NCBI GenBank assembly: GCA_010909165.1
Contig: MU008163.1
Location: 1,922,001 to 1,986,000 of the forward strand
Length of the DNA: 64,000 nucleotides
From: Anthoceros angustus
Taxonomy: Eukaryota > Plantae > Anthocerotophyta
Reading direction: 5' to 3'
Positions 2,324 through 56,000 of the stretch are shown here, in pieces. Made by a program: the position numbers and the translations under genes. Numbering within the stretch: position 1 is the first letter of the stretch; each line of letters starts with the position of its first letter. A model generated the notes under the pieces. The model saw only the letters and a program-made list of their open reading frames with translations, did no database searches and had not been told where the DNA came from.

Positions 2324-2397
2324 GGGGATCTAGCTCAGACGGTTGAGCATCCTCATGAGATTAGAGGAGCCCGGGTATCGAGACCCTACATCTCTTA
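2324..2397 (+). pseudogene. Degenerate tRNA-Ala-derived sequence (pseudogene or SINE head)
   Basis: GGGGATCTAGCTCAGACGGTTGAGC...GGGTATCGAGACCCTACATCTCT aligns with plant cytosolic tRNA-Ala (GGGGATGTAGCTCAGATGGTAGAGC...GGGGATCGATACCCCGCATCTCCA). D-stem GCTC/GAGC is intact; the anticodon arm is non-canonical. Confidence 0.7.
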
Positions 2398-3387
2398 TGG
2401 TGTAACGAATGCGTCATGCAATATTTTGCCTTGGACCAAGCGGACTGCTGCTGGTGGCCGGCTGGCCACCGCTCGTATTTTCTCTGTTCGTTAATCTACT
2501 TAAGCGAATTTATCACCACAAGAAACCGTCACAACGAGCAAATCTCTTTTTTGGGTAGTGTGCAAACGAGCAGATTTTGTTCCCTTGATCGGTTTGCTCA
2601 ACTAGTTGGCTGATCGTTTGCCTGATTGACGATATTATTGACAGTGCATGAATTCACCCACAAGGTAGCAAGTCCAAGAGCGAGTCCAAGCTGCTGGTTA
2701 GTGCAAGGAGGGAGGGCACAGGACTGTACGGACGTGTTCATACATGTATGCTCACCATGCCTATTTGAATAGGCGGTTATGATCAGATGCTTCTAATCCC
2801 ACCAATCAGAGCCAACATGAGTCCCCTAAAGGAGGCTCATGTCTCATATTCGTCTGCCAAGAACTGCACCCACATGGTACACTCTGTTGTGCTTGTCTTC
2901 CCATCAGAGACACACGAAAATGATGCTAAGCCAGCTTTTCACACAACTCTTACTTCGAGAAAGTGAAACTCCTCTTTTATTTGGTTCTGAGGGAGTTTTA
3001 CCAAGCTTCCTGTCCGAAAAGCAGACCAGCAGAGTTTGCTGCTGGATACAGGTCGCCAATGTCAAGAGCCCGGTCTGGCCTTGTTTTTAATGGCTCTACA
3101 GGGTCTCTTTCAGATCAGAAGCAAGGTTTGGAATGGCCAATGGTCGGGCAGATGGTGCGGTCCCTTCAGCTCTTGCTCTCGGGGGCAGTGGAATCTCTGA
3201 GAACTCGGTCCTCCTTCGAGAATGCGCCTGTCCTAGCACATGTAACCCAGGAACACTGAGGGCTCGTGGATGTTCCTCTGCATCTCAGAAAGGCACAGAA
3301 GCATGAGCCTGATTAGGTGTGGTGTGAAGGCACTCATGCTTTTCCCCGAAAACAAGAGTACGGATTTGTACGCAAGGTTGTGTAGTA

Positions 3388-3410
3388 GGGGATGTAGGTC
3401 AGATGGTAGA
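3388..3410 (+). pseudogene. 5' part (nt 1-23) of an interrupted tRNA-Ala(AGC) gene
   Basis: GGGGATGTAGGTCAGATGGTAGA matches the plant tRNA-Ala 5' end at 22/23 positions. Confidence 0.85.
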
Positions 3411-5209
3411 CCTAGCTCAGTCGGTAGCGTGGTGAGCGGAGTGGAATGGGGAGCATGGATGTGGCTTGAGGGTGGGCAGTGCGGATGCGTTGTGAGGTGA
3501 TGTGTAGTGTCCGGTAATGAGGGGGGTGCGAGGCCCGGGGCGATGGTGTGTATGTGTTAGGCGTTCCTCGGGATTAGGGTTTCCGTGGGCCCTGTGCAGT
3601 GTCTGTCTGATTTTTCAAAATGGCGTCCCTGTTCTCGGCTCCTTCGGATTCTCATCCTACGTTTGTGAAACCTACGGGAAAGTTTGTGGACACCAGGTTG
3701 ATTGCGCTGGAGCTTGAGGTAAAAGCCTTGGAAACTAAAGCTTGTTGATTGCGCTGGAGCTTCAGGTAAAAGCCTTGGAAACTAAAGCTTGTGATACCAG
3801 GTTGATTGCGCTGGAGCTTCAGGTAAAAGCCTTGGAAACTAAAGCTTGTTGATTGCGCTGGAGCTTCAGGTAAAAGCCTTGGAAACTAAAGCTTGTTGAT
3901 ACGACGTTGATTGCGCTGGAGCTTAAGTAAAAGCCTTGGGAACTAAGGCTTGTTGACAGCAGGTTGATTGTGCTGGAGCTTCAGGTAAAAGTCTTGAAAA
4001 CTAAGTTTGTATAGGACTTGGAGCTTGAGGTAAAAGTCTTGGAAACTAAGTTTGTATAGGAGTTGGTTCAAAAGATACAAAAATTGTGGCTGAGTTGGAT
4101 CAAAAATTATAACAGGATGTGGCTAAGTTGGATCAAGAAACTAGTGAATTATTTGATTGCTAGGCTTTCCAGTCTGTCCTTCAGGACCCCTCCTTGTGCT
4201 GATAGGGATTGGTTAATGAAGTCTGCTCTTAAAGATAGTGCCCAAGGTTTAAAGAAGGCTTTCACGCTTTCGCATGGAGGAATTACATATTTTGTTCGAT
4301 CAAAGATAAAGCAAGTCCCGGCGGTTTGGGAAAGGTTTTTACAAAGTTATTGATTCTAAATAGTAGCGATTATTAGGCTTATGAATGATAAATTGCAGGG
4401 ACATCTGAAACTACGAAGATATGTTTATGATTTGTCCTTTGGTTTTGCCAACCGGGTGAATGATCTCTCTCTGCAATTTCGAGAACAAGAGGTGAAGAAA
4501 ATTCCTTTCACCTGAAAAGTTGAGGACAAGGCTATAGGTTTGGAACATTCTTCATATAACCATCGAGAGAAATTACTTTTGGGTCACAAGCCTCCAGAGA
4601 TTACGGCAGTCCCTCCTTCCACAAAATGTTTTTTAGAAACTTCGGACCGGACCCGCCGTGCTTTGAATTTATGCTTTTCTAGTTTCTGGTTCTCATATTT
4701 AGGATCGGCTTGTTGCTGCTATCGAGTTTCTCAGCCGGTTACGGGTTAACGTGGCTATTCCACTTGCCTTTTGGCTGGGAAAGGATCCAAGCTGGGAACG
4801 CACTGTACTCTTGACTTTCCGTTCTTTGGTCGATCGGCTTCTAGTTTTGAAGGCAAGGACTACTTTGCGGGAAACAACCTTGTATATCAATGAGGACACT
4901 ACCCCATTGCAGTGGCAAAATAAGAAGGAGAAATTGCTTGCCTTTAAGGATGCTCTTGTCTTGGGACAAGTGGCCTTTTTTGGTGATGATGAGTTGGTTG
5001 TTTTGGAGCCTCGTCCTCGACCTCTTTGTGACAGTGTTCATTGATTATTTTGATTGCCTTCTTGTTTGCATCACACACTGTTACCGTCCCTCTAGTTCAC
5101 ACGATCGTATGTGCACTCAATTTTTCACCTTTTTACATTGTACTATGTCTCTCCCATGATGATGTGTCCATCCACAGTCGACATAAAATAAAATTGTTGT
5201 TGTTGTTGT
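3411..5209 (+). mobile_element. Non-autonomous ORF1-only LINE derivative inserted in tRNA-Ala
   Basis: Frameshifted ORF from ATG 3620: coiled-coil repeats (DTRLIALELQVKALETK, VAELDQKL), then DRTRRALNL and RTVLLTFRSLVDRLLVLKARTTLRETTLYINEDTTP...QVAFFGDDELVV (stop 5044), resembling the L1/CR1-type ORF1p RRM-CTD. Followed by a short 3' UTR, AATAAA and (TTG)6 at 5194-5211. TGGTAGA is duplicated at 3404-3410 and 5210-5216. No ORF2. Confidence 0.8.
3697..4060 (+). repeat. 47/57-bp tandem repeat (~7 copies) inside the ORF1 coiled-coil region
   Basis: gttgattgcgctggagcttcaggtaaaagccttggaaactaaagctt at 3697, 3744, 3801, 3848, ~3906, ~3963, plus a partial copy. Confidence 0.9.
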
Positions 5210-5216
5210 TGGTAGA

Positions 5217-5266
5217 GCGCTTGCTTAGCAGGCTAGAGGAGTGGGGATCCATATTTTGCATGTCCA
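5217..5266 (+). pseudogene. 3' part (nt 24-73) of the interrupted tRNA-Ala(AGC) gene
   Basis: GCGCTTGCTTAGCAGGCTAGAGGAGTGGGGATCCATATTTTGCATGTCCA aligns without gaps to the tRNA-Ala 3' part; anticodon AGC at 5227-5229; about 12 substitutions. Confidence 0.85.
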
Positions 5267-5524
5267 CTTGACCATGAGAAGTCATCAAAACAGATCCAAG
5301 CTACTATATCAGTCTTATTTTGGAGAATATGATAGAATCTGACTGATAAATTCTTTTCCGCCTTATTCTGGAAAATACAACTACTTTTTAAAGCTAGAAA
5401 CTTGACGAGTAAAGTAGTTTTTTTTTCACATATTCTTGAAATATTTTTGACAAATCAAATAACTTACTTGAAATGTGAAACTATAACAAAGCGCTAAAAA
5501 TAATATATATCATTATGTACATAT

Positions 5525-5999
5525 GGGGTACCCATCTCGTCACGAAGGAGGTTCTTATACTTTTTGTTTTTTCTAAGGGTGAGGTGGAGCACCAGCTAGT
5601 TTGGTGTGGCCAACTGGAGCTCCAGCAGGCAAATCGAGCCAGCTGGTGCTTCACCTCTGGTCATGCAAGTTGATCACCAAGTTGATCAATTGGTAGCAAA
5701 TCTCCGCCTAATCAGGTTCAGCGGCTGATAAAGGCCGGTTGATTGCTGCGCAGATCCATCCTCGCAACAACCAGACCGTCATAGACAGGGCAGGCGATCG
5801 CCGCGATCAGAACTGTTGCCATCGCCAGGCCGATCGCTCGTGGCTTGCCCATTACAGCGATCAGGTCTGCTGGAGCATTAGCTGCCTTGGTTCGCCGTGC
5901 TGAAGCTCCAGCTTGGTGAATCGGGCCAATTGGTGCTCCACCTCACCATCAGAAAAATAAAATGTATAACAACTTCCTTTGTGACGAGATCGGTAGGCC
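5525..5999. mobile_element. MITE with ~100-bp imperfect terminal inverted repeats
   Basis: Left end GGGGTACCCATCTCGTCACGAAGGAGG...GGTGAGGTGGAGCACCA versus right-end reverse complement GGCCTACCGATCTCGTCACAAAGGAAG...GGTGAGGTGGAGCACCA. ATAT flanks both sides (5521-5524, 6000-6003). Confidence 0.8.
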
Positions 6000-6407
6000 A
6001 TATGTTAGTCAATTATTCTAGATTCTAAAATTATTTGTCTATATATGTATTAAATTGGAAATATCCTTCAAATATTTTTGATGAAGACCTAGTAGAGTAA
6101 CTTGCTTGAACTGCGAACCTATAACTAAGCGCTAAGTTGCTAGTAATAATACACTATCATTATACCGAGACTCCAAAGTTTTCCGTCTAAATATGTACTG
6201 TGTGCGGCAGGTGCTGAGTAGGAAATAGGACAGGCTGCATACAGGTAGGTAGGGCTTGGGATTGACCTAACGTTATACCCTCAAGCCCGCCAAAACCTCA
6301 GCCCTAGTGACTTGAGTTGGAGCTTGTTGAGTAGTGTAGTGTGTTGGAGACACGATGTAGCGCGGAGCGTGGAATAGAAGCGATTTCATGCGCCGCGGCG
6401 GGACACA

Positions 6408-9400: not shown

Positions 9401-10507
9401 CCGACTCCTCACGTTTGCTAGTTGCTGGGCCGCACGGGTTAATTGTGGTATGGTGGCCTTAATGTCTTCTGCCTGTGCAGTCACATGTGACCGGCAGCTG
9501 CTTCTTGTTGCTAGCCCCTTACAGTTTTGTTTCATTTCCAGGTCGTGGATATAGAGAATGCGGAGGTCCTAAGGAAATTCGACATGTTTGTGGACCAAGT
9601 GGATTCCCCAGTGAGCTTGTTATCCACAAGTCTGGACGGTCAGTGGCTCGCTGCTGTAACTAGTGCAGGGCACATCTGCGTCTACAACTTAGAGACTTTG
9701 AGGTAAGCCTTTTTTCGAAGGTCGTCTGAGTGCACTTAGTATGTTGGCTTCAGAGGATTTGGTGAAAACATTTCTGAATGTGGTTTGAATTAACTTCCTG
9801 CACCTGCAGGCACCACTGGTCTATTCCTGCATTGGATGGAGCTTGTGTTACTGCTGCTGTATTCCACCCAGGGAGCAGCAACGTGCTTGTTGTTGGTACT
9901 GCAAATAACCAACTGCACTTGCTTGACATCGAAGCGAAAATGTTAAGCAATTGGTCCAAGAAATATGGATCACAGCTACCCCAGGAATTCTTGGAATTCC
10001 CCGGAGGCCTCTCTGGTCTTTCCATGCCTCCATCAGCTAATGCTACATCCTTGATTGTTTACAGCCCTAGGTACGGCTACCAACCATCTCTTGCAGTATG
10101 CTGGCTCGCTTGTCTTGCTCATGTTGCAGCGTGAGATTCTTTCATTGCCCCCTCCCCCGATCTACGCTGAATTCAGCTGGCTGCTCTGTTGTTCCAGGGC
10201 TATGTGTTATGTGGATTTTCTGAAACCTGTTGGTGAAGTAAGCACAACAGAAGCATACAAGCCCGACGAGGCGTCGCCATCCAAAATCAGCGCGAAAGCA
10301 GGGAATCACACCGTGGCTAACGGTCATCACTCTGCACCGAGGAGGAAAGAAGCCTCCGAGAAGAATTTTGTTATAGCTCGCTTTGAGGAACCAGTACTTT
10401 TCTTGTGCCATGTTTCAGAGGATTCAGTGTTTGTAGTAGAGAAACCTTGGATAGAAGTGCTGCACCAGAGACCCGCTCCTGTATTCAGGCATCTCTATGG
10501 GACTTGA
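6408..10507 (+). CDS. UTP4: WD40-repeat U3 snoRNP/SSU processome protein UTP4 (POPCORN/PCN homologue), multi-exon
   Basis: N-terminus [12 protein letters not shown]...[21 protein letters not shown]; motifs [10 protein letters not shown] and FHPHDIC; C-terminus [13 protein letters not shown] introns, e.g. 6570-6712, 6851-6939, 7241-7345, 7410-7511, 7626-8135. Confidence 0.92.
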
Positions 10508-12793
10508 GGTTTCTAATATAAATTGGACGTAAGCTAACTCATTTCCAGTGTTCCATCAGTCGCCTACTGCACTGATGCCCACTTCAGATCCTCCGTTCTT
10601 TCTCCAGATCCTGTGTGGTATCATGACCATTCTGCGTTTTCGCACCGGATACTGCGCGGAATTACTATGGCTTTGCAACCTTCTCTGACCTTCTCTTACT
10701 GCTGTGCTTCTTGCCAGGACTAGTTAACACAAGATCTGTCGGTCTGTACTGGGTCCTCGGATGTTTTCTTTTAAGGCAGCGTTGATCCATTCTTGTCTTG
10801 AATGTACATGCATCCGTGACTCGTCAATTGTGGCAGCTCGAGGCTTGTAACCAGGAACTAGACAGGTTGCACTGGTACTTCATGCAAGGACATCTGATGC
10901 CCCTGCTGCAAGCGTGCCCTGTTGCCTTCCCTGCACACAGACTCTACACAACGGCAACGGATCCCTGCACGAGGCCACGTGATGTGTGTCCAATGGCCCA
11001 TCCTGCCGGCAACCAGGTATGCACACAGAACTGCCTTTTACCCATCTTCCTTTCCATGGCTTTGAATACAAACGACATCCTCGATCGTCCTGGACGTCTT
11101 CGACGTTGCTTTTTTGCTTTCCGGGTCTTCGCAGCCCTGGGCCATGGGGCCATGGCTGCCAGGTCTGCCTGGGCCCGAGCCTGGGCAGCAAAACAAGGAG
11201 ACGCGACAGGATGGAGAAAGCAGAGGAAGAAGGTACCAGAAACGCCCGCCCCTCGCACACCCTGCTCTTTGTGCCGGGTTGGTGCCATTTTCCAATATTA
11301 GCACCCGCGGTGAAGCGGCCACGCCGCCCTTCTCACAAATACTGGATAAATCGAAGCCATGAATGAAAAGAGCCCGATCCCGTCCGTGCCCGAGCAAACC
11401 GGCTGACAAAACGCGCCTCCTTCATTGCAACGTGCAACGCGAGGGTTTGGCCTGTTTCGGGCCGGGCCCGCTTCCAATTCAATTCGAGCCCGTCGCGTGG
11501 CTCAGATATTTGAGCCGCCTGGACGGAAAGCGGCACATGGGAACACGCCTGGGACTCTATCTGAAACTCCCTGCTACCCATCATTCGACGTACATCTTCT
11601 AACCGCCTCAGTTATGCGCTTTTATGGCGCAGTGAAATCCCAATGTCAACGAGCTCGGCTACCCACACCTGTCACCTACCGGCGCTCGGGCCCGCAACCA
11701 GATTAACTTGCTGTACATAATTCGGCGCAGCTCTTGTTTATCGCGGCGAATCATGTCGCGATAAGCGAGGTTTAATGTACCGTACGAGCGTGACGATACG
11801 AGTGACTCGGGTTTCGACCCCTCGTCAGCTCGCCATGTGACCTGCAACTGCGCGGGTCTCACCGCTTCGCTAAATGTCGAAAGTCTGAATTAGGGTTTAA
11901 GCCGCGGATATTGTATTCAAACAATTGCGCGCACTGCCGGCGGGAAGGCGCCACGGGACGGGACAGGTCGGGTCGGGCCGGGTCGGGTCACGGGGGCAGG
12001 GGAGTACACCGACCTTGTTTGCTTGTCTGTCTTGCGCGTTGCCTGGAAATGCGAGCCTGCGACCGCCTTTCTTCCATGCCAGTGCTTGTGCGTTCTGAGC
12101 TCTGAGAGAGAGTTTTGATGACGATGCCCGCCCGTCTTATCTGTGTCACGATCCGGATCCGGCTGGCGTGCCGCCATTGGCTGCCGAGGAGTGTGTGACG
12201 CCTGGCCGCCTCTCGGGCAGCATCGCATTGCCCGGCCTCTTGGCACGGCCAGCCAGTCTGCTAATTCTGTCTCCTGATCGTGGTGAGGGACGGTGGCGCT
12301 CCCTGCCTGGAAGCATCCGCTTGCGATTGTGGGATAGGTTTGAGGAAATTCGTGCTGGAGGTTGGGAGAGCAGGGAGATCGAGCTCGGCTGAATGCTTTC
12401 ATGTAATTTGCAGCGGGAGGGATGGACGCTATGGTGAGGAATAGCTTGGATTGGAGCTCCTCCAGTAGTTGGATGCTTTTGCGTTTCTGTGAAGGAGAGG
12501 AGCTGGCGCTTTGGAAGCCGCTTGAGGGAGCCTGACTGTTCAGCTTTTCGGGACGTGAATCCGCTGCCCGGGTTTCGGTTCTGCGGGAGGTTGAGGCTTG
12601 GACGGTGTGTGGACGAGGGATGGGAGGCCGTTCGCGTCCATCCGGCAGGCGCGCTTTGTACGGCCCCGGTAGCGGAAGGAGGTCGAGGTCGCCGGATTGG
12701 CAGGTTTGTCAGCACGGATCTGGTTGATGCGTGCGGTGCGAGGGAGAGAAGGGAAGAGAAAGGAAAGGGAGGGGATGTTGCGCCGTTTGTGTG

Positions 12794-19305: not shown

Positions 19306-22300
19306 TCAAGATTCAGGTAGTTCCAACGATGGCGTCTCGGTTTGAAAAGAAGATAACTTGTCAAGAATGCTCTGTGCATCCTCTGGACTGCCACACCTAA
19401 CATACATGTCCGCCAGTGACCTCCTCATCGACTCACGGTACTCTAACCCGCCTTCAATTACCTCAGCGTGAAGCTGTTTACCAACTGCGAGGTCTTCTGA
19501 ACTTGCACAAGTTTTAAGAATGTGGAGAAAGATTTCTTCATTAGGCTTAACGCCCTCCACCTGCATTTGCTGGAAGAGCTTAAAAAGATAGGCTGCGGAC
19601 CCAGACTGAGCATGGCCTTCAAACATGGCACTCCACGAGTCTACGTTTCGATTGGGCAGAGTCTCAAACACTTGCTGGGCATCCACCAGACTCTTACACT
19701 TCACGTACATACTGATGAGGGCGTTGCTGGTGAACAGCTCTCCCTCATATCCAGATTCTTTGATGCGCTTATGCACCTCCCTGCCTTCCTTTAGAGCTGA
19801 TGCAGTACCACATGCGTTCAACATGAGCCCAAAGGTTGCAGAGTTTTCCTTAAAACCTTGATTCTGCATTTGCTGAAAAAGAGTAAAGGCTTCCTTGAGC
19901 TGCTTGTGCAGTGTATATCCTTTGATCATCGTGTTCCAAGAGATCACCTCCTTATCACGCATACCGTTGAACACTTTCCGTGCTTCAGAGGTGCTCCCAC
20001 ACTTACAGTACATGTCAATTAGAGCGTTCCCAACATACACATCGGAATCAAATCCACTTTGGTTTATCTCATTATGAAGCTGCTTCCCAAGATCCAGCGA
20101 ACCTAGGCTGCCACAGGCCCCGAGGATGTTGACAAAAGTCACTTGGTTTGGCTTCACCTCCGAAGCTTTCATCAGCCGATACATGACAAAGGCTTCCTCT
20201 TCCAGACCACAATATGAGTAAGCCCCAATCATTGCCGTCCAAGAAAACACGTTCTGTAGTGGCATCCTGTCAAACACTTGGCGGGCATCTTCAATGCTCC
20301 CGCATTTTCCATACATTGACACCAGGGCAGTTCCAACAAACAAGTCCGTATCTGACCCGTTGCTCAATAAGTGGGAATGAATCCTCCTACCCTCCTCAAG
20401 GGAACTCGGTCGGTTACACACATTCAGAACACTGGCGAAAGTGACCTCGTTAGGCCTTACACCCTCTCTCTGCATCTGCCAGAACAGTCTCAGTGCCTCC
20501 TTTGGACGGCCGCCACGTGCATACCCACTAATGAGTGCTGTCCAACAGACCACACTATTGTGACCAGACATCTGCACAAAAGCTTCCCGAGCATCGTCGA
20601 GAGACCCACATTTTGCATACATGTTAACCAGAGAAGTCCCCAAAAACGTATCCAGCTCCAGTCCTTTCTTCTTGATGTAAGCATGCACTCGCTTGCCCTC
20701 CTGCAAGTTCAACGTATGTGCGCAAGCATTGAGTACACCGACCAGGGTAATCTCATTTGGTTCCATACCGTGAGACTCCATCTGCCTAAATAATTGCAGT
20801 GCCTCACCCGGCTGCCCATGCTGAACGCATCCAGCAATAAGAGCAGTCCAAGTGACAATATTTCGTTCAGGCATCTTGTCAAACACTTGACGTGCCTCTG
20901 CCAAACTCCCGCATTTGGAGTACATCGAAACGAGACCAGTACCAACATACAGGTTACAATCGTCCCCAGTTCCAAGAATCCTGCTGTGGAGCTGCCTGCC
21001 CAATTCTAGAGATGCAAGTTTTGCACAAGCTGTCACTACACTGCAAGTTGTCACGGAGTCAGGAACGCGACCTTCATCTTGCATCTGGTAAAACATCTTC
21101 ACAGCTTCCTCAGAGCGCCCTTTGAACACAAGGGCCCCAATCAGGATGTTCCAAGTGATAACGTCTCGAATGGGCATTTTCTTGAATACTTGAAGGGCAG
21201 TATCAATGTCCCCTCTTTTGACATGCATATCCACCAGAGCCGTTCCCACAAAGACGTCAGTTTCATAGCCGTATTTCACAGCAAGTGACTGTGTCTTGTT
21301 GCCTTGATCTACAGCTCCTAGACTGGTACATGCATTTAGTATGTGCACGAAGGTGAACTGATCTGGACTTAGTCCCTCCTTTTGCATCTGGACGAACAAC
21401 CTCAAAGCTTCACCACCATTTCCGTCATGTGCATAGCTGCCGACCATTGCATTCCAGGCTACAGTATCACGTGACGCCATCTGATCAAAGACTTGGCGTG
21501 CATCTTTTACACTCCCACACTTCGTGTATGCTGACAGCAAAGCAGTTTGAACAATAACATGAGTTTCAAAGCTGTACTTCTTCAGCTGTTTGTGAATTTT
21601 CTTCACAGAATCTAGGTCGTCACACGTGTTGATCAGGTTGACGAAGGAAACTGGATCTGGCTTCATGCCCTGTTGGAGCATTTCATCGAAGAGCCCCAAA
21701 GCCTTACTATTGAGTCCCTGTCGTGCATACCCTCCGATCATGGAATTCCATGCTACAACATCTCGTTCAGGCATTGTATCAAATACCTTGCGGGCCTCTT
21801 CTATGCTGCCACACTTCGCATACATGTCCACCACAGTGTTTGCAACATAGGATTCAGTATGCAAACCAGCTTTAATCGCCAGCTCATGAAGCTCCTTCCC
21901 CTCCTTGAGAAGTCTCAAGGTCCCACACACACTGAGGATGCTCACAAACGTATATTTATCCCCCTCCAGACCCTCTTCACGCATCTGTTGGAACAACCTC
22001 ATAGCCTCCCTGGGCTGCTGTTCCTGCACATAACCGTCAATAATCACAGCGTACGTGACTGTGTTCTTCTCAAGCAGACTGTCAAATACCTCGTGAGCTT
22101 CTTTCATCCTCCCACACTTGACATACATCCAGACAAGTGTGGTCCCTAAAAAAACATCTGGCTTGTAGCCTATACTGATAATATGACTATGAACCAGCTT
22201 ACCATCTGCCAACAACTTCAGCTTGGTGCAGCGTTGCAGAAGACGGACACAGGCAGCGGAGAATATCAAGTCCGGGTCCAACCTGTGATCTATAGAGCGC

Positions 22301-22500
22301 ACCACTTGCAGGGCCTCCTCAAACCGTCCCTCGTCACACAATTTTTTGACTTGCTTTGGTACAGCTCGCTGCAACAATGGAACAGGAGAAGGAGGGCTCA
22401 CAGACGAAGGAGGACTCATAGAAGAACGAGGCCTCGTAGAAGAGGGAGGCCTCAAAAAAGCGCCACCATTGTACACCTGTGGCAAGTAGCAAGAAAACAT
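19306..22500 (-). CDS. PLS-class pentatricopeptide repeat protein (~30 motifs), intronless, no E/DYW domain
   Basis: Regular L-S-P triplets (TF..IL.AC / .ALV.MY.KCG...A..VFD.M / .W.A.I.GY). First ATG at 22500 (MFSCYLPQ...) with a Ser/Pro-rich, transit-peptide-like N-terminus; the ORF ends after an S motif. Confidence 0.93.
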   Translation of the reverse strand: MFSCYLPQVYNGGAFLRPPSSTRPRSSMSPPSSVSPPSPVPLLQRAVPKQVKKLCDEGRFEEALQVVRSIDHRLDPDLIFSAACVRLLQRCTKLKLLADGKLVHSHIISIGYKPDVFLGTTLVWMYVKCGRMKEAHEVFDSLLEKNTVTYAVIIDGYVQEQQPREAMRLFQQMREEGLEGDKYTFVSILSVCGTLRLLKEGKELHELAIKAGLHTESYVANTVVDMYAKCGSIEEARKVFDTMPERDVVAWNSMIGGYARQGLNSKALGLFDEMLQQGMKPDPVSFVNLINTCDDLDSVKKIHKQLKKYSFETHVIVQTALLSAYTKCGSVKDARQVFDQMASRDTVAWNAMVGSYAHDGNGGEALRLFVQMQKEGLSPDQFTFVHILNACTSLGAVDQGNKTQSLAVKYGYETDVFVGTALVDMHVKRGDIDTALQVFKKMPIRDVITWNILIGALVFKGRSEEAVKMFYQMQDEGRVPDSVTTCSVVTACAKLASLELGRQLHSRILGTGDDCNLYVGTGLVSMYSKCGSLAEARQVFDKMPERNIVTWTALIAGCVQHGQPGEALQLFRQMESHGMEPNEITLVGVLNACAHTLNLQEGKRVHAYIKKKGLELDTFLGTSLVNMYAKCGSLDDAREAFVQMSGHNSVVCWTALISGYARGGRPKEALRLFWQMQREGVRPNEVTFASVLNVCNRPSSLEEGRRIHSHLLSNGSDTDLFVGTALVSMYGKCGSIEDARQVFDRMPLQNVFSWTAMIGAYSYCGLEEEAFVMYRLMKASEVKPNQVTFVNILGACGSLGSLDLGKQLHNEINQSGFDSDVYVGNALIDMYCKCGSTSEARKVFNGMRDKEVISWNTMIKGYTLHKQLKEAFTLFQQMQNQGFKENSATFGLMLNACGTASALKEGREVHKRIKESGYEGELFTSNALISMYVKCKSLVDAQQVFETLPNRNVDSWSAMFEGHAQSGSAAYLFKLFQQMQVEGVKPNEEIFLHILKTCASSEDLAVGKQLHAEVIEGGLEYRESMRRSLADMYVRCGSPEDAQSILDKLSSFQTETPSLELPES

Positions 22501-24241
22501 GGTCTCCACCTGCAGACCCTGACCCCTTGCTTGAAAAAGGTGAGAAGTTCCAAAACAGCAACAGCTCCTTCGAGGCACGAACTAGGTTCCTGGAGCATAC
22601 CAGAATAGTGCCTGTACATGTCAGCTACTGGAAGGTGGCTGTCTGGACCTGCTGGTCAGTGGTTTCCTCCTCATTGCCTCCACAGCGTCAAGACATTAGA
22701 AGCTGGATCAGCGAAGGTGGCAGAAGAAGCTCAAGGTAGAACCGCCAGAAAGCACACACAGTAGTCCGAGTCTAGGAATGCGTGTCAGCTCGGAGCCTGG
22801 CATTACCAGCTCTTCCGACACGGACACCCCCTAACAGTCAAGACGACGAGGCCACATTCCATGAAATGAACACCTGATCCTATTCCCAACTGGCTATCCT
22901 CCCTGCTGTAGCATGGGTTGGTTCTCGTCGGAAGGTGTAGGGAGTCTTTACGCGGTTCCTTCGGCCGGCCCGGAACACACCGAAGGCCAACGGGCAGCAA
23001 CTCCGGGAAATGGATCCCCCAATCATCAGTTCAATCCCAAAGTTGCACATATTGTAAAGGGCTTTGGATTGAGCTCGTAACACGCGATGAGAACCGAAGC
23101 CATTTGCAACCTGTCAAGCGAATCACACATCCGCAGCATGTGCTTGGGCAGGCATGTGGGTTCCTGCAGCCGCGTTCAGCACTGGCTCTTAGCAGAGGGC
23201 ATGGATCGGACATATTCAGCTCGGGATGTAGGCTTCTCATGCTACATAGATGGAAGAGTTCAGCTTCCAAGGTTTTCAGCGAGGTGGTTTCACTCGACGT
23301 CTTTGTCTGGCCGCATGCTGCTAGCAAGGACGGTTTGGAATTCCAGAACAGATAAATGCCTTGCCATGGGGGTGTCCAGCTCAACCTCTGCATTGCCAAC
23401 TTCCAGCGCTTGGTCAGGAGGTTGTCCATGGAGGACAAACCTAGTCTCCGATGGCAGCGAGATCATGAACTGTTTGTATGGAGATGGGCATCTGAAGAGG
23501 GCTCTGCGGCCTCGGTTGAGACCTGAGTGCCCAGGCAGCTAGATAGGGACATATCCAGGCATGGGTTGGAGTGCGATAGGAGGACATGGGCAATTGTATG
23601 GCTGCAATTTTGGCTCCATAAGGAGCTTCAGAGTGTTTCGACATTTTGGAACAACGCAGTGCTTCCGAAGCAGACATCTCAGGGTTTACTGCAAATGGTC
23701 GAGGTGGAGAGGCTTTGAATACGCCCTTGCGGATGACACAAAAGGGTCGCGAATGGAACAAGCCCATACTTAATAGCATATCGAACGCTACTGAGAAATC
23801 ACTGAGAAGCCACTGTTATCTCCACTGAGAAATCTACGATGGGGTCATGCACCTCACGGGCCCGTACCGGCAGGTAGTTGTATCTTCTTATCGTTAGCCT
23901 CCGTAACTACCTAACCACTCACTAGAATGCTTGATTAAGCAAACCTGAGTGAATGATCCCAAACTTAAAGTATGTGTGCATGAGTGAATTGATGCAAGAG
24001 TAGTATAACTTGTCAAAAGTTCCATCATATAGTAATTCCACATGGTACACCATAGTGTAAGTGAGATTTTGATATTTAATTTATAATATTTATTATATAT
24101 CTGATTTCATATATATAAAGATTAAAAGATGAAATTAATAAGTAATTACTTTGTAGCTAGTCTTGTCCATTGATTATCATGGAACTAAGTGTGATATCGA
24201 GATTGAGCAATATCATATCGAAACATAGAAACATTTTAGCC

Positions 24242-50083: not shown

Positions 50084-53000
50084 ATGGTGAGGTCCAAGTG
50101 TGTTTTAGAGGCTCGGGATGCTGTTGGAGGAGGATATGGGTGTTGCGAAAGGGGCTTATTTGATGCGTTTCCGCATTTGCAGTTTACATTCGCGGCAATC
50201 AATGATGTGGAGGTGGGAGATGGTGATGTCGACGAGGAGGTACCCACCAAAGAAGCGCAGGTATGCTTGTGGTTCAGGGATGGACTGCGTGGAGAGAGAG
50301 CGAGAGAGATTGTGTGGATGTTCTGATTTGGATTTGTGTGCAGGAGTTTCACCTCACTGAGATGTATGAAGAAGCTCTCGTTAAAATGCAAGCGGGGCAA
50401 TTCGAAGTGGCTAAGGACTTGCTTCAGTCAATATTGCAGAACCCTCTTCTTCAGGGGCAGGTGGGTTTCGGATGCGAAAAGGACACGCTTTTTGTTTAAG
50501 GATTTGTGTTGCTGATTGTGATTTAATGGCTGCAGATGCATAGCTCATCGAGTGCCAACTTCATGCCTCATTTAAGGTGCGTGTGGTCCTCCATGTGCTA
50601 TTGCCAATTCTCATGATTGTTTGGGACAATATATCTGTTTTGTACCATAGTTTTCTGGATCAATCGTTGCCCATGTCACTGATGTCTGTCGCTGGCTGTG
50701 TGACGGACCCTGGATTTCTTGTTTCAGATATTCAAGCTTAAAAAATTTGGCGGAAGCATTGACCAAGCTGGGGTCGGAATATCATGGAGAAGCATTGCAC
50801 TGTTATCTCCAGGCCGTGGAAATGGATGATAAGGATGTTGTCATTTGGAATCGACTTGGGACTCTCGCTGTCTCGCTTGGCCGTTTGTTTATGGCTCGAA
50901 GAGCCTTTGAACAGGGTGTGCTATGCAGTCCGCGTAACTGTAAGCTTGAGCTTTTCATATTTCTTGGGTCCTAGGCAGTTGTTTTTCATTAAGTTTGATT
51001 TGAGAGTCTGACTTGACTTTAGAAGTGGGTGCTCATTTCCTCGTGTTCTTTCTCTACAGGGCTTTGTATGGAGAAGTTGTTGGAAGTCCTGATTGCTGTT
51101 GGTGATGAGCTTGCATGTGCTTCTGTAGCAAAGCAACTGCTACAGCTTTCACCTTTTCATGCAAGGGCACGATATGTCCATGATGTTCTGGAAGGGCGTA
51201 TTAACTATCACATGATAAATCAGGACGAATCTTGCAATAATTTGCCGGGTTTCGTGCCATACGGCATCGACCTCCTTAATCCAACACACCGCAGCTTGTC
51301 GTTCACCAAGAAAAGGAAGTTGGAAGAGCTTGAAACAGATGAATCCTATCGCAAGAAGCAGCGATTGCACTGCATAGATTTGAGAATAAGTGACCCGTCG
51401 TGGGTTACCCTTGCAGACACTCTTCTAAGGGTCTTGCAAGAAAAGCCATCACTGTCCCCATATTGTATGATCGGTGGTGAAAAGAAATCGTTTCAGGATT
51501 TACAGAAGTCTGATGCGTGGCCCATAGCAAATGCTCGTCTCCAGTTTGCTGTGAGTGGCCCTGAGCTCGACATGGAAGATGTGACAGGGTCACATGATAT
51601 ACCGTTGCAGGTGAAAGATAATGTGTCCCTAGAGCATGATGGGTCGAGCTGTGCAACAGAACTGACTCCATGTCCACCTCTTAATGACAGTTCATGCTGT
51701 GAGGAAGCTGCCATCAGTAAAGGCTCTGGGGCTGACTTGCAGGACGGTAGACAAGAGGATAGGGCGGAGGTAGCTGGGCTGGCAGGAGACCCTAAGAATG
51801 CTGGCAGAAAGGATGCTCAAAGTCATCAGGATTTGTTGCATGAGCGTCGTAGTTCTCGAATTGAACGATTGCGAAGTGGGTGCACTGTTGGACAGGATAA
51901 AGGTATGGATCTTGAGGAAAATGGGAAGCACTCAAAGGACTTGATGCTGTTGCTTGAGCCTTTTGTTGTTCACCCTGTGGATGAAGAAGAGAGCTGTGTA
52001 GAACTTGCCAGCGGGAGTCTTGTCGCTGAGTCCTCACCTGTACAGCCACTCTCTGCGGATGAGCAGCAAGCAGAAGTTAAGGAGTTTCTTCACAATCAGA
52101 CTGCAAACAGTGGTGCTTATGATGTGAGTGAGAGGTTGCTGGAAAAGCTGGCCACATCCAAGTGTGTGGCAGACTATGCACCGGTGCTGGAGCTAGAGAA
52201 GCGGATAAGGCTATCAACAAAGAGGAAAAGAACAATCAGCTGCAGCCTGTTTCTTGCTGAGCTGTATGCAGATGCAGCAGCAAGTGCAACCAGTGAAGAT
52301 ATTGCTAAACAACTTGTGGAAGATGCCAAATACCACCAATGTACAGTATGGGAGGATGTGGCTTCAGAAGTGGAGCTGTCAGATGGGTCCAGCTCAGGAT
52401 CCCTTCATGGTCTTCAGATTGGACCAGCTCCCGATGCAGGAGACATTGGATATAAGAAAGGAACCCCTGATTTAAGTGTTGACAATGTACATGGTGATAT
52501 GGTTGAGGATGCAGGATTGGCCTTCTGTCCCATGAAGTTTAGTCTGCAATCAAGTCCCTTCACAATGTCCTCCACTCGAGGACAGGAATGGCCTTTTTGG
52601 GTCCGTTATCACTGGTTGGATGGTCGTATTAAAATTATTTCTGGCCAACAGGAGCAAGGTTTGAAGCGGTTAAGGACATGCCAGAAATTACTTGAGACAA
52701 AGGAGCAAATGGACAACTCAGTTGCTGCTGTTACTCTACCTCATTGCAAGGTAGATAGTCTTGTTACCACTTCCGCTATACAGAAAAAGATTGGGGGTTT
52801 AGAAATTGTGGACCTGATAAGAAATGGCGGCATGAAGGCAGTTGAGCAGGGTCGCTTTGAGGAAGTTATAGAGATGCTCTCTCCAGTCCTGTTTTCAATG
52901 AAAGGTCAGACAGTGGAGAAAGTGAGGCCAGGTGGTGGGTGCACTCTTCGAGACATGGACTGCTCTCATGAACTTGTTGGGTTACGCCTAGTACTATTGG

Positions 53001-56000
53001 CTTCCAGAGAACTGAAGCCGGAGCACGTGATCCTAAGTTTGCAGTGTCATGCACGAAGGTTGGAAATGCTTTGCCACGAGGTAGACTCTAGGGATGGGGA
53101 CTGGAAAGAGGGTTTCTTGCTGCCCACACACGGCCAGGGATCTGCTTCTGATGTGAATGGAGTCCAAGAAATAAATTTGGACTCTGCCAGGCTGATCTCG
53201 GAGGAAGTAAGATGCATATCACGGTGTGCTGTTCGCGTTCGGGAGAATTTAGATTCGGGGAACTTGGTAAGCAACCTACTCTGTGGAACCGTCATCTTTG
53301 GATCACCCGTTCCGGAGTGCTCAATGTGTAATTGGCTTTGCAGGAACGAGGCACTGTACCACTTTCTCTCCTCAGGAGGCTCCAGCTGCAGATTCTAACA
53401 GTAATGGGCCAGAATGTAGACTCACTATGGCAGGTGAAGCCAGGTGCAAACTCTGGTGCTCACTTTCATGGTGTGTGTCTCGTAGACGCAGCTGTTGCGT
53501 TCTGCAGGCTGAAGTACTTAGATCTTGAGGCCACAATCAGTCAACAGGTAATGACCACCTCAATAAATGACACATGTGCTTGTGCACCAACAGTCTTTGT
53601 CTGACAGGAATTTGTTGACTCTGCAGGTGTCACTGCTTGTGACAGTCCATGATGTACTTGCTGAGCATGGGCTCTGCTGTGCGGGTGAAGATTGCGAAGG
53701 GGGAGAGGGAACCTTTTTACACATGGCTATCAAGCATCTTGGAGCTTTGGATCTGAGAATCAAAGGAATGAGCTGTAAACAGACACCTGGACAAAGTACA
53801 GGATCTCGGGATCAGAAAGGAACATGGGATGAATTAGATGAAACAGCTGCATCTGAGCATCAGTTCGTTGTGGACAGAGAAGGTGTTAGTGATGCTGCAA
53901 GTGTGCCTGATAAAGCACATGCTACGGTGGAAGTTAGCAGAGTGGTTGAGGGCAGTGGCTTCAATTCGGCTGAAAAAAGACGACTGGAGTCAGCCATTGA
54001 TTGTGCCCTTGATCAGAGTTTCTTTTGCCTCTACGGCCTGAACTTGCGGGGTGGTGACATAACAAGTCCCGAAGGAATTGCGCAGCACAAGAACACCAAC
54101 AGAGGAGATTATCAGACCAAGGACCAGTGTGCAGGAGTTCTTCAGTACATTTTGCCCTACGTGAATTCCTGCTCAGTAAGCTTCCTGTGCACTCTGTTCT
54201 GATTTGACAGGGCGACATGTATCAGTTGAGTCTGTGGTGGACTGAACGCTGTATCTGGATTTTGCAGAGATATCGACTTCAGAAGCTGAAGAAAGTTTTG
54301 CGAGCTGTTAGGGAACAATTTCCACAGCCTCCATATGAAGTGCTTTCGAGAAATCCGATTGATATATTCTTAGACGATCCAACATTTGATGAGAGCAAAC
54401 TTTACGAAATGATAATGTCTGGAGAAAGTGTTGAAGATATCTTGGAATTGGTGCTGGGGAAGGAGGATATCACAAGCAGCACACCCCATAACCTAGGTGA
54501 AAATGGGGTTGCTTCAGAGGTAAGGGCAGCGGAGGTGCATATTTTTCTGAACTCTGCATCGTCATCCATATCCTGTATGCCCATTACTGTTGAAGCCTCT
54601 TGCTCAAAAGCTTCACGAGGCAGTGAGAAGGATGGTGAAACTCTGGTCAACAAATCCCTTGAAGACAAGGTTCCTCCTCCTGATCCGTATTCGGAGGTTT
54701 ATGAGAACCTGTACTATCTGCTTGCCCAGATTGAGGACATGAGTGCAGGTGAGAAGTATCCTGGATTCATCCTGACCACAGAGGGAGAGCAGTTCATCTT
54801 CTCAAATGCAAATCTTGTGAAGTACGATTTAATGTACAATCCAGCTCGATTTGAGAGCTGGCACAGGCTTGCCCATTTATATGATGAGGTTTGTTTTTCC
54901 GTCTCTTAAGCAACTCTGACCCGCTGTTTTTCAGCAACCTCTGCATTTTTTTACTTTTTTGCGATTGCAACCTCTGCAATTGATACTAATCAATGCAACC
55001 CACTACGTCACGTTTGTTATATTTGCAACTGCAGGACGTCGACTTGGTGCTTAATGACGGTAGCAAGAAAATCAATGCATGTTCCTGGCGACGAAAACCC
55101 AACTATGCTAGGCGCGTGGAGGCGAGTCGTAGACGAAGTCGCAGGTGCTTCCTAGTCAGTCTGGCTCTAGCAAGCACGCCAGAATTGCGGGTTGGCTCTC
55201 TAATCTCTAGTAGTCTAGTAGGTCTCTGCAGTAGCGATTGCTGCAATATTGAGTTTCACGGGTCTTGCAGAAGACTGAAGTTCCAGACTCCTATCTTCCA
55301 TTTGACACCTTGGTTGGGTGCTTGGCAGAGTGAGGTGCATGGACTCCTAGCTCTGGTTTATTATGACAATCTCCAGAATGTGGCTCCAGCGTATGATCAA
55401 CAGCAGAATGTTCCCATGAGGGATGCTTCATGGCTTGCTGCATGTGAAAGGGCATACATTCAGTTTGAAAGGGCACAGTCTTCCAGGTCTGATTGGTACA
55501 CCCTAACTCTGCACTTCGAGTTTCTGGTTCCCAGATTTTAACCCCAACAGGGCCAGCAGTTGTACTCATATATTGATTGCTGTTACAGGCCTGATTGGAC
55601 ACATCCGCATTACCAGGGAAAGCTTGCTGAGAAGATGGGGAGGCCTTACACAGAGTGGCTTGCCCACTATGCCAAGGCAGTGAAAATGAACCCCAGTGCT
55701 GTAGACACATTTTACAGGTTACATGCTTCGCGGATCAAACTCCTTTGCAAGAAACAGCTCGATGACATTGGATGCCTTCAGGTGTGTGACAAAGTCTGCT
55801 TCTGCCACGCTTCTCTCTGCTCCTCTCTTGCTGGTCGTGTCCTTATGCTTCTCTCGTGTGACAGGTTTTAGCACAATACTCATACTTGCCGGTCTCAAAA
55901 GAGAAAGTGGCAAAGTACTTGGGCCCCCATGGCTCAAGCAATGCTGTGTCAGAGGAGAACCTGGGCAAAGCTTGGAAGGCGCTATTTGATGACTGCATGG

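Follow-up and report, generated by a model that had tools for sequence, protein, structure and literature searches.

A decayed, reverse-transcriptase-less retroposon with a LINE ORF1p-type gene remnant in the D-arm of a tRNA-Ala(AGC)-derived sequence of Anthoceros angustus

Introduction

How did a remnant of a LINE ORF1p-type gene come to lie inside the D-arm of an Anthoceros angustus sequence derived from tRNA-Ala(AGC), and was its landing place chosen or accidental? We followed up an earlier note on this DNA, which had described an ORF1-only retroposon set precisely into a tRNA-Ala(AGC) gene and had proposed that it might belong to a tRNA-targeting, non-autonomous family. The window is the whole stretch of DNA that was analysed (64,000 nucleotides, 64 kb), and all coordinates are counted from its first letter unless a liverwort locus is named.

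Results

The host tRNA-Ala sequence

Three features of the window concern the host sequence.

3388 to 3410, plus strand: tRNA-Ala(AGC)-derived 5' part, positions 1-23 (acceptor 5' strand, D-stem, D-loop)
5217 to 5266, plus strand: decayed tRNA-Ala(AGC) 3' part, positions 24-73 (AGC anticodon arm, degenerate T-arm, acceptor 3' strand)
2324 to 2398, plus strand: second tRNA-Ala-like unit, decayed and uninterrupted, 1 kb upstream of the split tRNA-Ala

Taking out 3411-5216 rejoins 23 and 50 nt into 73 nt, just as the earlier note had it. Comparison was made with tRNA-Ala(AGC) genes that were called by ARAGORN and fetched from metagenome contigs. Among the fetched loci, one natural variant of tRNA-Ala(AGC) matched the 5' part at 23/23 positions by BLAST. 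The joined 73 nt form 18 of the 21 canonical cloverleaf pairs (shuffled sequences: 8.9 +/- 2.2, with at least 18 pairs in 2 of 100,000 shuffles) and have AGC at 34-36, G3:U70, U8, A14, G18G19 and U33 all present. Identity to the ARAGORN-called genes is 60-61 of 73, and in the T-stem CCCC has become TTTT. ARAGORN did not recognise the joined sequence as a tRNA, even with thresholds relaxed to 50%, and the Rfam tRNA model matched neither of the two halves, whether searched whole or truncated. The description of the joined sequence as an exact tRNA-Ala(AGC) is thus not upheld, with 13 of 73 positions differing from real genes and no call by either program. These comparisons support a split sequence that is tRNA-Ala(AGC)-derived and is broken in its D-arm.

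By the time of insertion the target may already have become a pseudogene, or it may have been a repeat derived from a tRNA. A reading along these lines takes the target to be a tRNA-derived SINE head or a member of a tRNA-like repeat family, in which case the insertion would have interrupted no tRNA gene of the cell. The missing ARAGORN and Rfam calls speak for it, as do the other decayed unit 1 kb upstream (54/73 identical to real tRNA-Ala(AGC), with an anticodon loop larger by 2 nt) and a first T4 run that comes about 50 nt past the 3' end of the split tRNA-Ala. Against it stand the length and register, which are exactly those of tRNA-Ala(AGC) at 73 nt with G3:U70 retained, the lack of any SINE-like body or common flank connecting the two tRNA-Ala-like units, and a pattern of decay (7 transitions among the 13 changes) that fits plain ageing after disruption. 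Weighing both sides, we consider this reading improbable.

Boundaries and retroposon hallmarks of the insert

The insert measures 1,806 bp (3411-5216) and is located at position 23 of the tRNA-Ala(AGC)-derived sequence. Its junctions and non-coding parts are as follows.

3404 to 3410, plus strand: left target-site duplication TGGTAGA (tRNA positions 17-23)
3428 to 3619, plus strand: G-rich 5' UTR of the element, with a T5 stretch (about 3611-3615) expected to terminate transcription by RNA polymerase III
5045 to 5193, plus strand: 3' UTR of 149 nt with AATAAA immediately 5' of the tail and no second ORF
5194 to 5211, plus strand: (TTG)6 microsatellite tail, its final TG being shared with the start of the right TGGTAGA
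5210 to 5216, plus strand: right target-site duplication TGGTAGA

Several hallmarks named in the earlier note were confirmed here: the 7-bp duplication of TGGTAGA at both junctions (3404-3410 and 5210-5216), the 3' end made up of AATAAA followed by (TTG)6 at 5194-5211, and the absence of reverse transcriptase, with neither a reverse transcriptase (RT) nor an endonuclease (EN) match in the insert. The remainder of the 64-kb window was likewise free of EN and RT matches. Inspection of the ends revealed no terminal inverted repeats or long terminal repeats (LTRs), and a BLAST search of the window with the insert itself returned only the self match and tandem-repeat matches. The ORF1 stop codon falls at 5042-5044 and is followed by 149 nt to the tail, so that the duplication-bounded unit contains no ORF2. 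Taken together, these observations support an insert that is a target-site-duplication-flanked, RT-less retroposon with a LINE ORF1p-type gene remnant. A second copy of the element was not found in the window or in the searchable protein collections and metagenome contigs, which do not include this genome. A search with the PPR gene had as its best match a Logan protein at 64% identity, and the named matches came from seedless plants and gymnosperms at 42% or less.

Layout and decay of the broken ORF1

The reading frame of the element falls into three parts.

3620 to 4066, plus strand: start codon and N-terminal coiled-coil-type region, frame-broken, with tandem repeats of 47, 57 and 104 nt
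4063 to 4702, plus strand: central part of the broken ORF, read largely in the frame of 3412, where 3 in-frame stops interrupt it
4703 to 5044, plus strand: longest open piece (113 codons and stop), which covers the remainder of a LINE ORF1p-type RRM plus a CTD-like domain

The N-terminal half of the ORF is disrupted by the out-of-frame tandem repeats (47/57/104 nt). Within it, the motif LIALELQVKALETKAC has hydrophobic a/d spacing at 1, 4, 8 and 11, which is heptad-like as judged by eye in a region that is frame-broken; in relatives the N-terminal halves are of coiled-coil type, according to weak Pfam matches. In the frame of 3412, 7 in-frame stops lie over 3868-4749. A motif of RRM beta-1 type, DRTRRALNLCFSSF, is found at about 4646-4690 and resembles RSRRNNLRFEGL, ARGKNIRIVGL and ARKLNLRVVGL in relatives P0005, P0002 and P0018, a likeness seen by inspection only, since BLASTP of the ORF piece 4540-4746 against the homologue P0002 from the liverwort Riccia gave no alignment. 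The earlier statement that the insert encodes an ORF1p-like protein therefore needs dividing: the likeness to ORF1p stands, whereas today the reading runs through three frames and meets many stops. Both the element and the split tRNA-Ala are decayed, and nothing at the locus is functional today.

Identity of the C-terminal piece

A phmmer search with the 113-aa piece against 1.84 billion proteins produced 24 matches, weak though significant (E 1.1e-6 to 1e-3). In the resulting alignment (A1), the pattern AHRxG...RTI..F...DR..VL...LKGT.IY.NEDL...GKIAYF is conserved and common to the piece and its relatives. When the A1 profile was compared with PDB, the four best matches were all human L1 ORF1p (2ldy, 2ykp, 2yko and 2w7a; E 7e-6 to 3e-3), the first three of them at E 7e-6 to 1e-5. 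The profile similarity to LINE ORF1p that the earlier note had called for is accordingly present, with human L1 ORF1p reached at E 7e-6.

An alignment-based AF2 model of the piece (pLDDT 87) replaced a single-sequence AlphaFold model (pLDDT 47) and was used for structural comparison. Foldseek placed L1 ORF1p in its top 3 positions, though weakly (E 0.2-0.5). VIA-align aligned the model with L1 ORF1p over 100-102 residues spanning RRM and CTD (Z 7.1/6.4/6.4; best 2ykp_C, Z 7.1 over 100 residues), whereas ordinary RRMs aligned to residues 1-66 only. In human L1 ORF1p (PDB 2ykp, 2yko, 2ldy, 2w7a) the RRM and CTD come after a coiled coil, for which the insert has a putative counterpart; identity to it is 10-16% (10-13% in the structural alignments), a remote likeness of domain architecture.

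Other searches were less productive. Pfam returned no family for five ORF pieces at E up to 10, the L1 ORF1 family included; a word-based protein search with a 97-aa piece had no match; and a scan of metagenome contigs turned up no close relative of the ORF1 domain. ESM-Atlas searches by feature and by shape led to eukaryotic clusters only, a few of them with Baculo_FP_2nd, which serve as leads only.

Genomic context in the liverwort Riccia bears on the same point. The homologue P0002 (8536-9558 of its locus, L002) precedes by 19 bp an ORF (9577-10848) with Exo_endo_phos_2, and RVT_1 follows after. This position upstream of an ORF2 with endonuclease and reverse transcriptase supports the ORF1p identity of the insert's piece. 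From profile, model and context together, the C-terminal piece is supported as the RRM and CTD-like domain of a LINE ORF1p-type protein. The ends of the liverwort LINE relatives had no tRNA fragments. An A-box-like match in the Riccia locus was discarded, as it proved to be merely a hairpin.

One further explanation for such a protein remnant is that the insert is a retroposed copy of a host gene domesticated from a LINE ORF1 (L1TD1-like), and belongs to no transposable element family. Its ORF1-only content, the one copy in view and the AATAAA close to the 3' end would all agree with this. We nevertheless regard it as very improbable: the tail is (TTG)n and not poly(A), a tRNA-fragment head (described below) and a D-arm target suit a LINE-type life cycle, and an intact or close homologue was not found among the 1.84 billion representative proteins.

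A tRNA-Lys-like head

The first bases of the insert resemble part of a second tRNA.

3411 to 3427, plus strand: insert head, tRNA-Lys positions 6-22 (A-box/D-arm), 17 nt in sense orientation

The head is identical to real tRNA-Lys(CTT) at 16 of 17 positions. Its 15-mer 3413-3427 occurs 6 times in the 122 fetched loci, every time inside a tRNA-Lys gene, and by chance 0.08 head matches with up to 2 mismatches would be expected in the window. It breaks after G22, at most 1 nt from the site at which the tRNA-Ala is split (A23). To judge from this sequence match, the head suggests that the progenitor resided in another tRNA gene. A SINE-like, Pol III-driven reading of the head was rejected, given that a B box is lacking and that a T5 run lies at about 3611.

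It may also be observed that the head ends at G22 and not at A23, and that chimera formation with a 5' tRNA fragment could be its source instead.

The head is where accident has to be weighed against choice. A non-specific ORF1-only or internally deleted LINE may have landed by chance in a decayed tRNA-Ala pseudogene, the Lys head being a chimera produced by reverse transcription or RNA ligation. Such an account gains from the single insertion that is visible, and from a strong selection effect: with very many insertions screened, one random match inside a tRNA is not improbable. 5' tRNA fragments often end in the D-loop or D-stem, which would explain the break at position 22 with no targeting at all. 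Yet the host and head breaks lie at most 1 nt apart, which for a random break in 73 nt has a probability of about 4%, and the Lys head begins at tRNA position 6 and not at position 1. Mammalian genomes are known to contain chimeric tRNA/LINE-1 insertions in which the tRNA piece is truncated, which favours a chance origin; in that mammalian survey, however, the piece is mostly antisense and spans roughly half the tRNA (positions 1-37), whereas here it is sense and covers positions 6-22 (bioRxiv 10.1101/2025.02.02.635956). We hold chance landing to be unlikely, though to be taken seriously.

Discussion

Proposed origin and target choice

The reading that we prefer, with some confidence and well short of certainty, is that the locus is the fossil of a single retroposition by a non-autonomous, ORF1-only LINE derivative, driven by a partner element and descended from a progenitor in another tRNA gene. 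Integration would have proceeded by target-primed reverse transcription, with endonuclease and RT supplied in trans by an autonomous relative. A nick in the bottom strand, on the left side of TGGTAGA, would free a ...CCA-3' end that could base-pair with the last UG of the (UUG)n tail and serve as the cDNA primer; a second nick 7 bp away would give the target-site duplication. The element RNA apparently began with tRNA-Lys positions 6-22 and ended that portion at the D-arm site, from which we infer that the progenitor sat at the equivalent site of another, tRNA-Lys-like gene. Its transcript would have started within or upstream of the 5' half of that gene. The partner endonuclease would prefer the D-loop/D-stem motif GGTAGAGC, which is conserved in many tRNAs.

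Specificity for tRNA targets is plausible under this origin. Two events bear on it, a direct one at position 23 of tRNA-Ala and a presumed one at position 22 of a tRNA-Lys-like sequence, and together they are suggestive but not sufficient. A wider proposal, which we put forward tentatively and lean slightly against, is that a land-plant LINE lineage, probably of hornworts, which recognises ..GGTAGAGC in several tRNAs, inserts at this motif and is co-transcribed with an upstream tRNA fragment, spawned an ORF1-only parasite that exploits its targeting machinery. The case for target specificity is drawn from one directly examined copy.

If true, D-arm targeting of several tRNAs by a plant lineage would extend both tRNA-gene targeting and ORF2 loss in taxonomic and mechanistic range, and would give a concrete motif and a partner endonuclease to seek. 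Site-specific LINEs are models of how harm to the host is avoided and are starting points for programmable insertion tools; the locus also bears on the turnover of tRNA genes in bryophyte genomes.

Comparison with known systems

Among ORF1-only elements, the mammalian HAL1 ('half-L1') is non-autonomous, consists of ORF1 and LINE ends only, and is mobilised by the ORF2p of its partner (PMC5753468). The Anthoceros element resembles it as a LINE derivative with ORF1 and LINE ends and without ORF2. HAL1, however, descends from the L1 of mammals, ends in poly(A) and lacks target specificity, whereas the Anthoceros element, known from one copy, belongs to a seedless land plant, carries a (TTG)n tail and is inserted in the D-arm of a tRNA sequence. 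Drosophila HeT-A and its relatives (Jockey clade) are ORF1-only telomeric LINEs that need the ORF2 of related elements, and ORF2 loss has recurred within this target-specialised telomeric lineage (PMC13534243). HeT-A differs from the present element in its clade, in a gag-like ORF1 with zinc knuckles and in its target, which is the chromosome end and not a site within a gene.

Non-LTR elements reported to be specific to tRNA genes include NeSL-1_TV (tRNA-Pro, Trichomonas) and LIN15_SM and LIN25_SM (tRNA-Arg and tRNA-Glu, planaria), a NeSL-related group assigned to the restriction-like-endonuclease elements (PMC4640811). Each of these three is reported for one tRNA species, whereas two are implied here (Ala now and, earlier, one that is Lys-like); unlike the NeSL group, the Anthoceros element has an L1 RRM-type ORF1, a plant host and a liverwort relative with an APE-type endonuclease. 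Insertion at fixed positions in or beside multicopy small-RNA genes, which the present element may share, characterises the L1 elements of the Tx1 clade (Keno, Mutsu, Dewa) and Dada, of which Dada-tA inserts inside tRNA-Ala and several families duplicate a portion of the A box (PMC3706591). Dewa differs in that its target is, by description, the spacer of tRNA-Leu and not the gene, and the Dada elements differ as DNA transposons, not of LINE type.

The earlier note had put the combination of features forward as one not known to be described. That is too broad in one respect, as tRNA-specific non-LTR elements (PMC4640811) and target-specialised ORF1-only LINEs (PMC13534243) are each known, and it holds in another, as the searchable literature yielded no report of tRNA-targeting non-LTR elements or ORF1-only LINEs in land plants. 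The taxa described there are Trichomonas and planarians for the former and mammals and Drosophila for the latter (PMC4640811, PMC5753468, PMC13534243). If the wider proposal is true, the Anthoceros element would be a plant counterpart that joins R2/Tx1-style gene targeting with HeT-A/HAL1-style loss of ORF2.

Structure of the insertion

Removal of the 1,806-bp insert (3411-5216) leaves flanks of 23 nt and 50 nt that join to 73 nt, and the flanks overlap by 7 nt because the heptamer TGGTAGA is present at both junctions (3404-3410 and 5210-5216). At its end the insert carries AATAAA and then (TTG)6 (5194-5211); junctions, duplication and 3' end are all as the earlier note had described them. The overlap of the flanks, the AATAAA and the (TTG)6 are the marks of a single event of retroposition that duplicated 7 bp of the target site. 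The element could alternatively be a retrocopy of a domesticated ORF1 gene, but the (TTG)n tail speaks against this and we consider it unlikely. No second copy of the insert and no autonomous partner was found within the 64-kb window, in protein collections or in the metagenome contigs scanned. The parts of the locus are as follows:

3388-3410: tRNA 5' part, first 23 nt
3679-4066, plus strand: tandem repeats in the ORF1 coiled-coil region, with periods of 47, 57 and 104 nt
4703-5041, plus strand: longest open stretch, 113 codons, with a stop at 5042-5044
5217-5266: tRNA 3' part, last 50 nt

Coding remnant and ORF1p identity

An ATG at 3620 starts a frame that is broken soon after, the frame from 3412 contains seven stops within 3868-4749, and reading through the ORF of the insert requires at least three frame changes. 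In the tandem repeats, a 104-nt unit (47 + 57 nt) is present in 2.7 copies at 93% identity; 104 is no multiple of three, and this period disrupts the reading frame of ORF1. The repeats recall the coiled-coil region of L1 ORF1 in mouse, a region polymorphic in length. In the repeated peptide LIALELQVKALETKAC, positions 1, 4, 8 and 11 are hydrophobic, which, judged by eye, is coiled-coil a/d spacing. Merely 149 nt separate the stop at 5042-5044 from the tail. No likeness to an endonuclease or reverse transcriptase was found in the insert or the rest of the window, which agrees with the reported absence of the latter. The proposed ORF1p-like coding capacity thus survives as an ORF1p-type remnant, but not as an intact frame, given the stops, frame changes and out-of-frame repeats.

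Pfam and a word-based protein search gave no match for the ORF pieces of the insert. An exhaustive phmmer search with 4703-5041 against 1.84 billion representatives returned 24 proteins (E-values 1.1e-6 to 1e-3; 30-47% identity) and nothing closer. Among these are several hypothetical proteins from Riccia sorocarpa, a liverwort, in which a long N-terminal half of coiled-coil type precedes the matching C-terminal domain. For one of them (P0002), the last ORF of the gene model ends at position 9558 of its genomic locus and the next starts at 9577 with Exo_endo_phos_2, then RVT_1; because this ORF comes directly after it, P0002 belongs to a bona fide APE-type LINE as its ORF1. This liverwort LINE (CM100798.1; 7983-12500 of the locus) has an ORF1 made of a coiled coil and the same C-terminal domain as the insert, an APE-type endonuclease/RT ORF2 starting 19 bp after ORF1, and a further RT fragment just upstream; its ends showed no tRNA fragments.

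An alignment built from the window piece and its 24 hits has a conserved pattern that includes the window copy. Searched as a profile against all PDB sequences, it gave human LINE-1 ORF1p as the best four matches (2ldy, 7.3e-6; 2ykp and 2yko, 1.2e-5; 2w7a, 3.3e-3), in keeping with the likeness to LINE ORF1p proposed before. AlphaFold, supplied with this alignment, produced a confident model (pLDDT 87), for which the best three PDB matches by Foldseek were L1 ORF1p, weakly (E 0.2-0.5). The top VIA-align matches were 2ykp_C (Z 7.1), 2ykq_C (Z 6.4) and 2yko_A (Z 6.4), with 100-102 residues aligned; these L1 ORF1p matches span model residues 1-106 (chain 173-293, RRM plus CTD), whereas generic RRM or ACT-like domains aligned to residues 1-66 only. 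Just upstream of 4703-5041 and one frameshift off, DRTRRALNLCFSSF resembles the beta-1 motif of the relatives (RSRRNNLRFEGL / ARKLNLRVVGL), by eye only, since BLASTP of the piece carrying it found no match. We regard the ORF as LINE ORF1p-type at the level of domain architecture, with remote homology, because gene order, conserved pattern, profile match and modelled structure agree.

The split tRNA-Ala

ARAGORN called no tRNA in the whole window, and none in the joined sequence (3388-3410 + 5217-5266) even with thresholds down to 50%. Rfam found none at gathering level or at E up to 10, also in runs that permitted truncated matches by having each half abut the end of the searched stretch. For a tRNA-Ala reference, metagenome contigs were scanned with the window's own 27-nt 5' motif (N at position 11), which gave at least 120 stretches; from these, 125 matches were taken, with 34 distinct 73-mers among them, the commonest of which (79/125) is called tRNA-Ala(AGC) by ARAGORN. 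One contig fetched in this way (L105, 1-9465) carries an unusually dense array of 28 tRNA genes in 9.4 kb.

The joined sequence is identical to the commonest 73-mer at 60/73 positions and to the best variant at 61/73; its 13 substitutions from the reference are 7 transitions and 6 transversions, and its T-stem has changed from CCCC to TTTT. It keeps 18 of 21 canonical cloverleaf pairs (shuffles 8.9 +/- 2.2; 2 of 100,000 reach 18), together with AGC at 34-36, G3:U70, U8, A14, G18G19 and U33. By its identity to the reference, its pairing and the retained AGC and G3:U70, it derives from a tRNA-Ala(AGC) and has decayed; the split falls between positions 23 and 24, and positions 17-23 are duplicated. 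The earlier note had seen an exact 73-nt tRNA-Ala(AGC); length and origin stand, but exactness does not, given the substitutions and the lack of a call. Overall, its observation was partly confirmed and its interpretation partly supported. Rather than a working gene, the element may have hit a pseudogene or a tRNA-derived repeat.

Another tRNA-Ala-like unit, uninterrupted and still more decayed, is located 1 kb upstream (2324-2398, plus strand); it is 54/73 identical to a real tRNA-Ala(AGC), has an anticodon loop 2 nt larger and is not called by ARAGORN. The two units may represent an old tRNA cluster or members of a tRNA-derived repeat. Two inverted repeats of ~76 bp (5519-5594 / 5931-6005; 85% identical, ~340 bp enclosed) just downstream of the split tRNA resemble a MITE-type element.

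The tRNA-Lys head and possible target recognition

Of the first 17 nt of the insert (3411-3427, CCTAGCTCAGTCGGTAG), 16 are identical to positions 6-22 of a real tRNA-Lys(CTT), which is the best-matching of the 199 tRNAs called across the fetched loci; the chance expectation in the window, allowing up to 2 mismatches, is 0.08. All six occurrences of the 15-mer 3413-3427 in 122 fetched loci lie within tRNA-Lys(CTT or TTT) genes. By comparison, the head was not copied from the host tRNA-Ala, since only 13/17 nt agree. It stops after G22, and the host tRNA-Ala is broken after A23.

On the simplest reading, the retroposed RNA came from a copy located in a tRNA-Lys-like gene at the equivalent D-arm site, its transcription began inside or upstream of the 5' part of that gene, and the tRNA-Ala break and the tRNA-Lys head record two independent events at one tRNA position in two isoacceptors, which points to recognition of a shared ..GGTAGAGC motif rather than a single tRNA species. 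The main rival is a chance insertion of an element with a chimeric head. The D-loop is a frequent end point of 5' tRNA fragments, which favours this rival by weakening the argument from coincidence. It is also favoured by the tRNA/LINE-1 chimeras documented in mammals, but these are mostly antisense and half-length (bioRxiv 10.1101/2025.02.02.635956). Polymerase III is unlikely as the transcribing enzyme because the head is not followed by a B box and a T5 run is present at about 3611.

The duplication, the tail, the absent RT, the ORF1p-type remnant, the tRNA position and the foreign tRNA head are the observations underlying the following scheme. A related autonomous LINE would have mobilised the element in trans. 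A bottom-strand nick left of TGGTAGA would expose a ...CCA-3' end, with which the (UUG)n tail could pair over 2 nt through its final UG; the TG that closes the tail cannot be told apart from the one that opens the duplication. A second nick, 7 nt away, would produce the duplication.

Other features of the window

An intact, single-exon gene on the minus strand (19306-22578) encodes a PPR protein of 1,089 aa; the closest protein in the collection is 64% identical (Logan assembly), and named hits (≤42%) are from lycophytes, ferns, liverworts, mosses and gymnosperms. An open frame of 789 aa on the plus strand (51029-53398) has no Pfam match at E 0.001; an ESM-Atlas feature search weakly suggests the coatomer alpha C-terminal region (0.88), so that the frame may belong to a COPA-like gene as one large exon.

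Comparison with known systems

A literature search found no land-plant example of a tRNA-gene-specific non-LTR element or of an ORF1-only LINE derivative, and the value of the finding hinges on a genome-wide census of copies. NeSL-1_TV (tRNA-Pro), LIN15_SM (tRNA-Arg) and LIN25_SM (tRNA-Glu) are non-LTR retrotransposons specific to tRNA genes (PMC4640811); Dewa targets a tRNA-Leu spacer, and Dada DNA transposons lie inside tRNA genes, tRNA-Ala among these (PMC3706591). HAL1 of mammals is an ORF1-only LINE derivative (PMC5753468), and ORF1-only elements are recurrent at Drosophila telomeres, where the loss of ORF2 is linked to specialisation on a target (PMC13534243). The element is a variation on these already known kinds.
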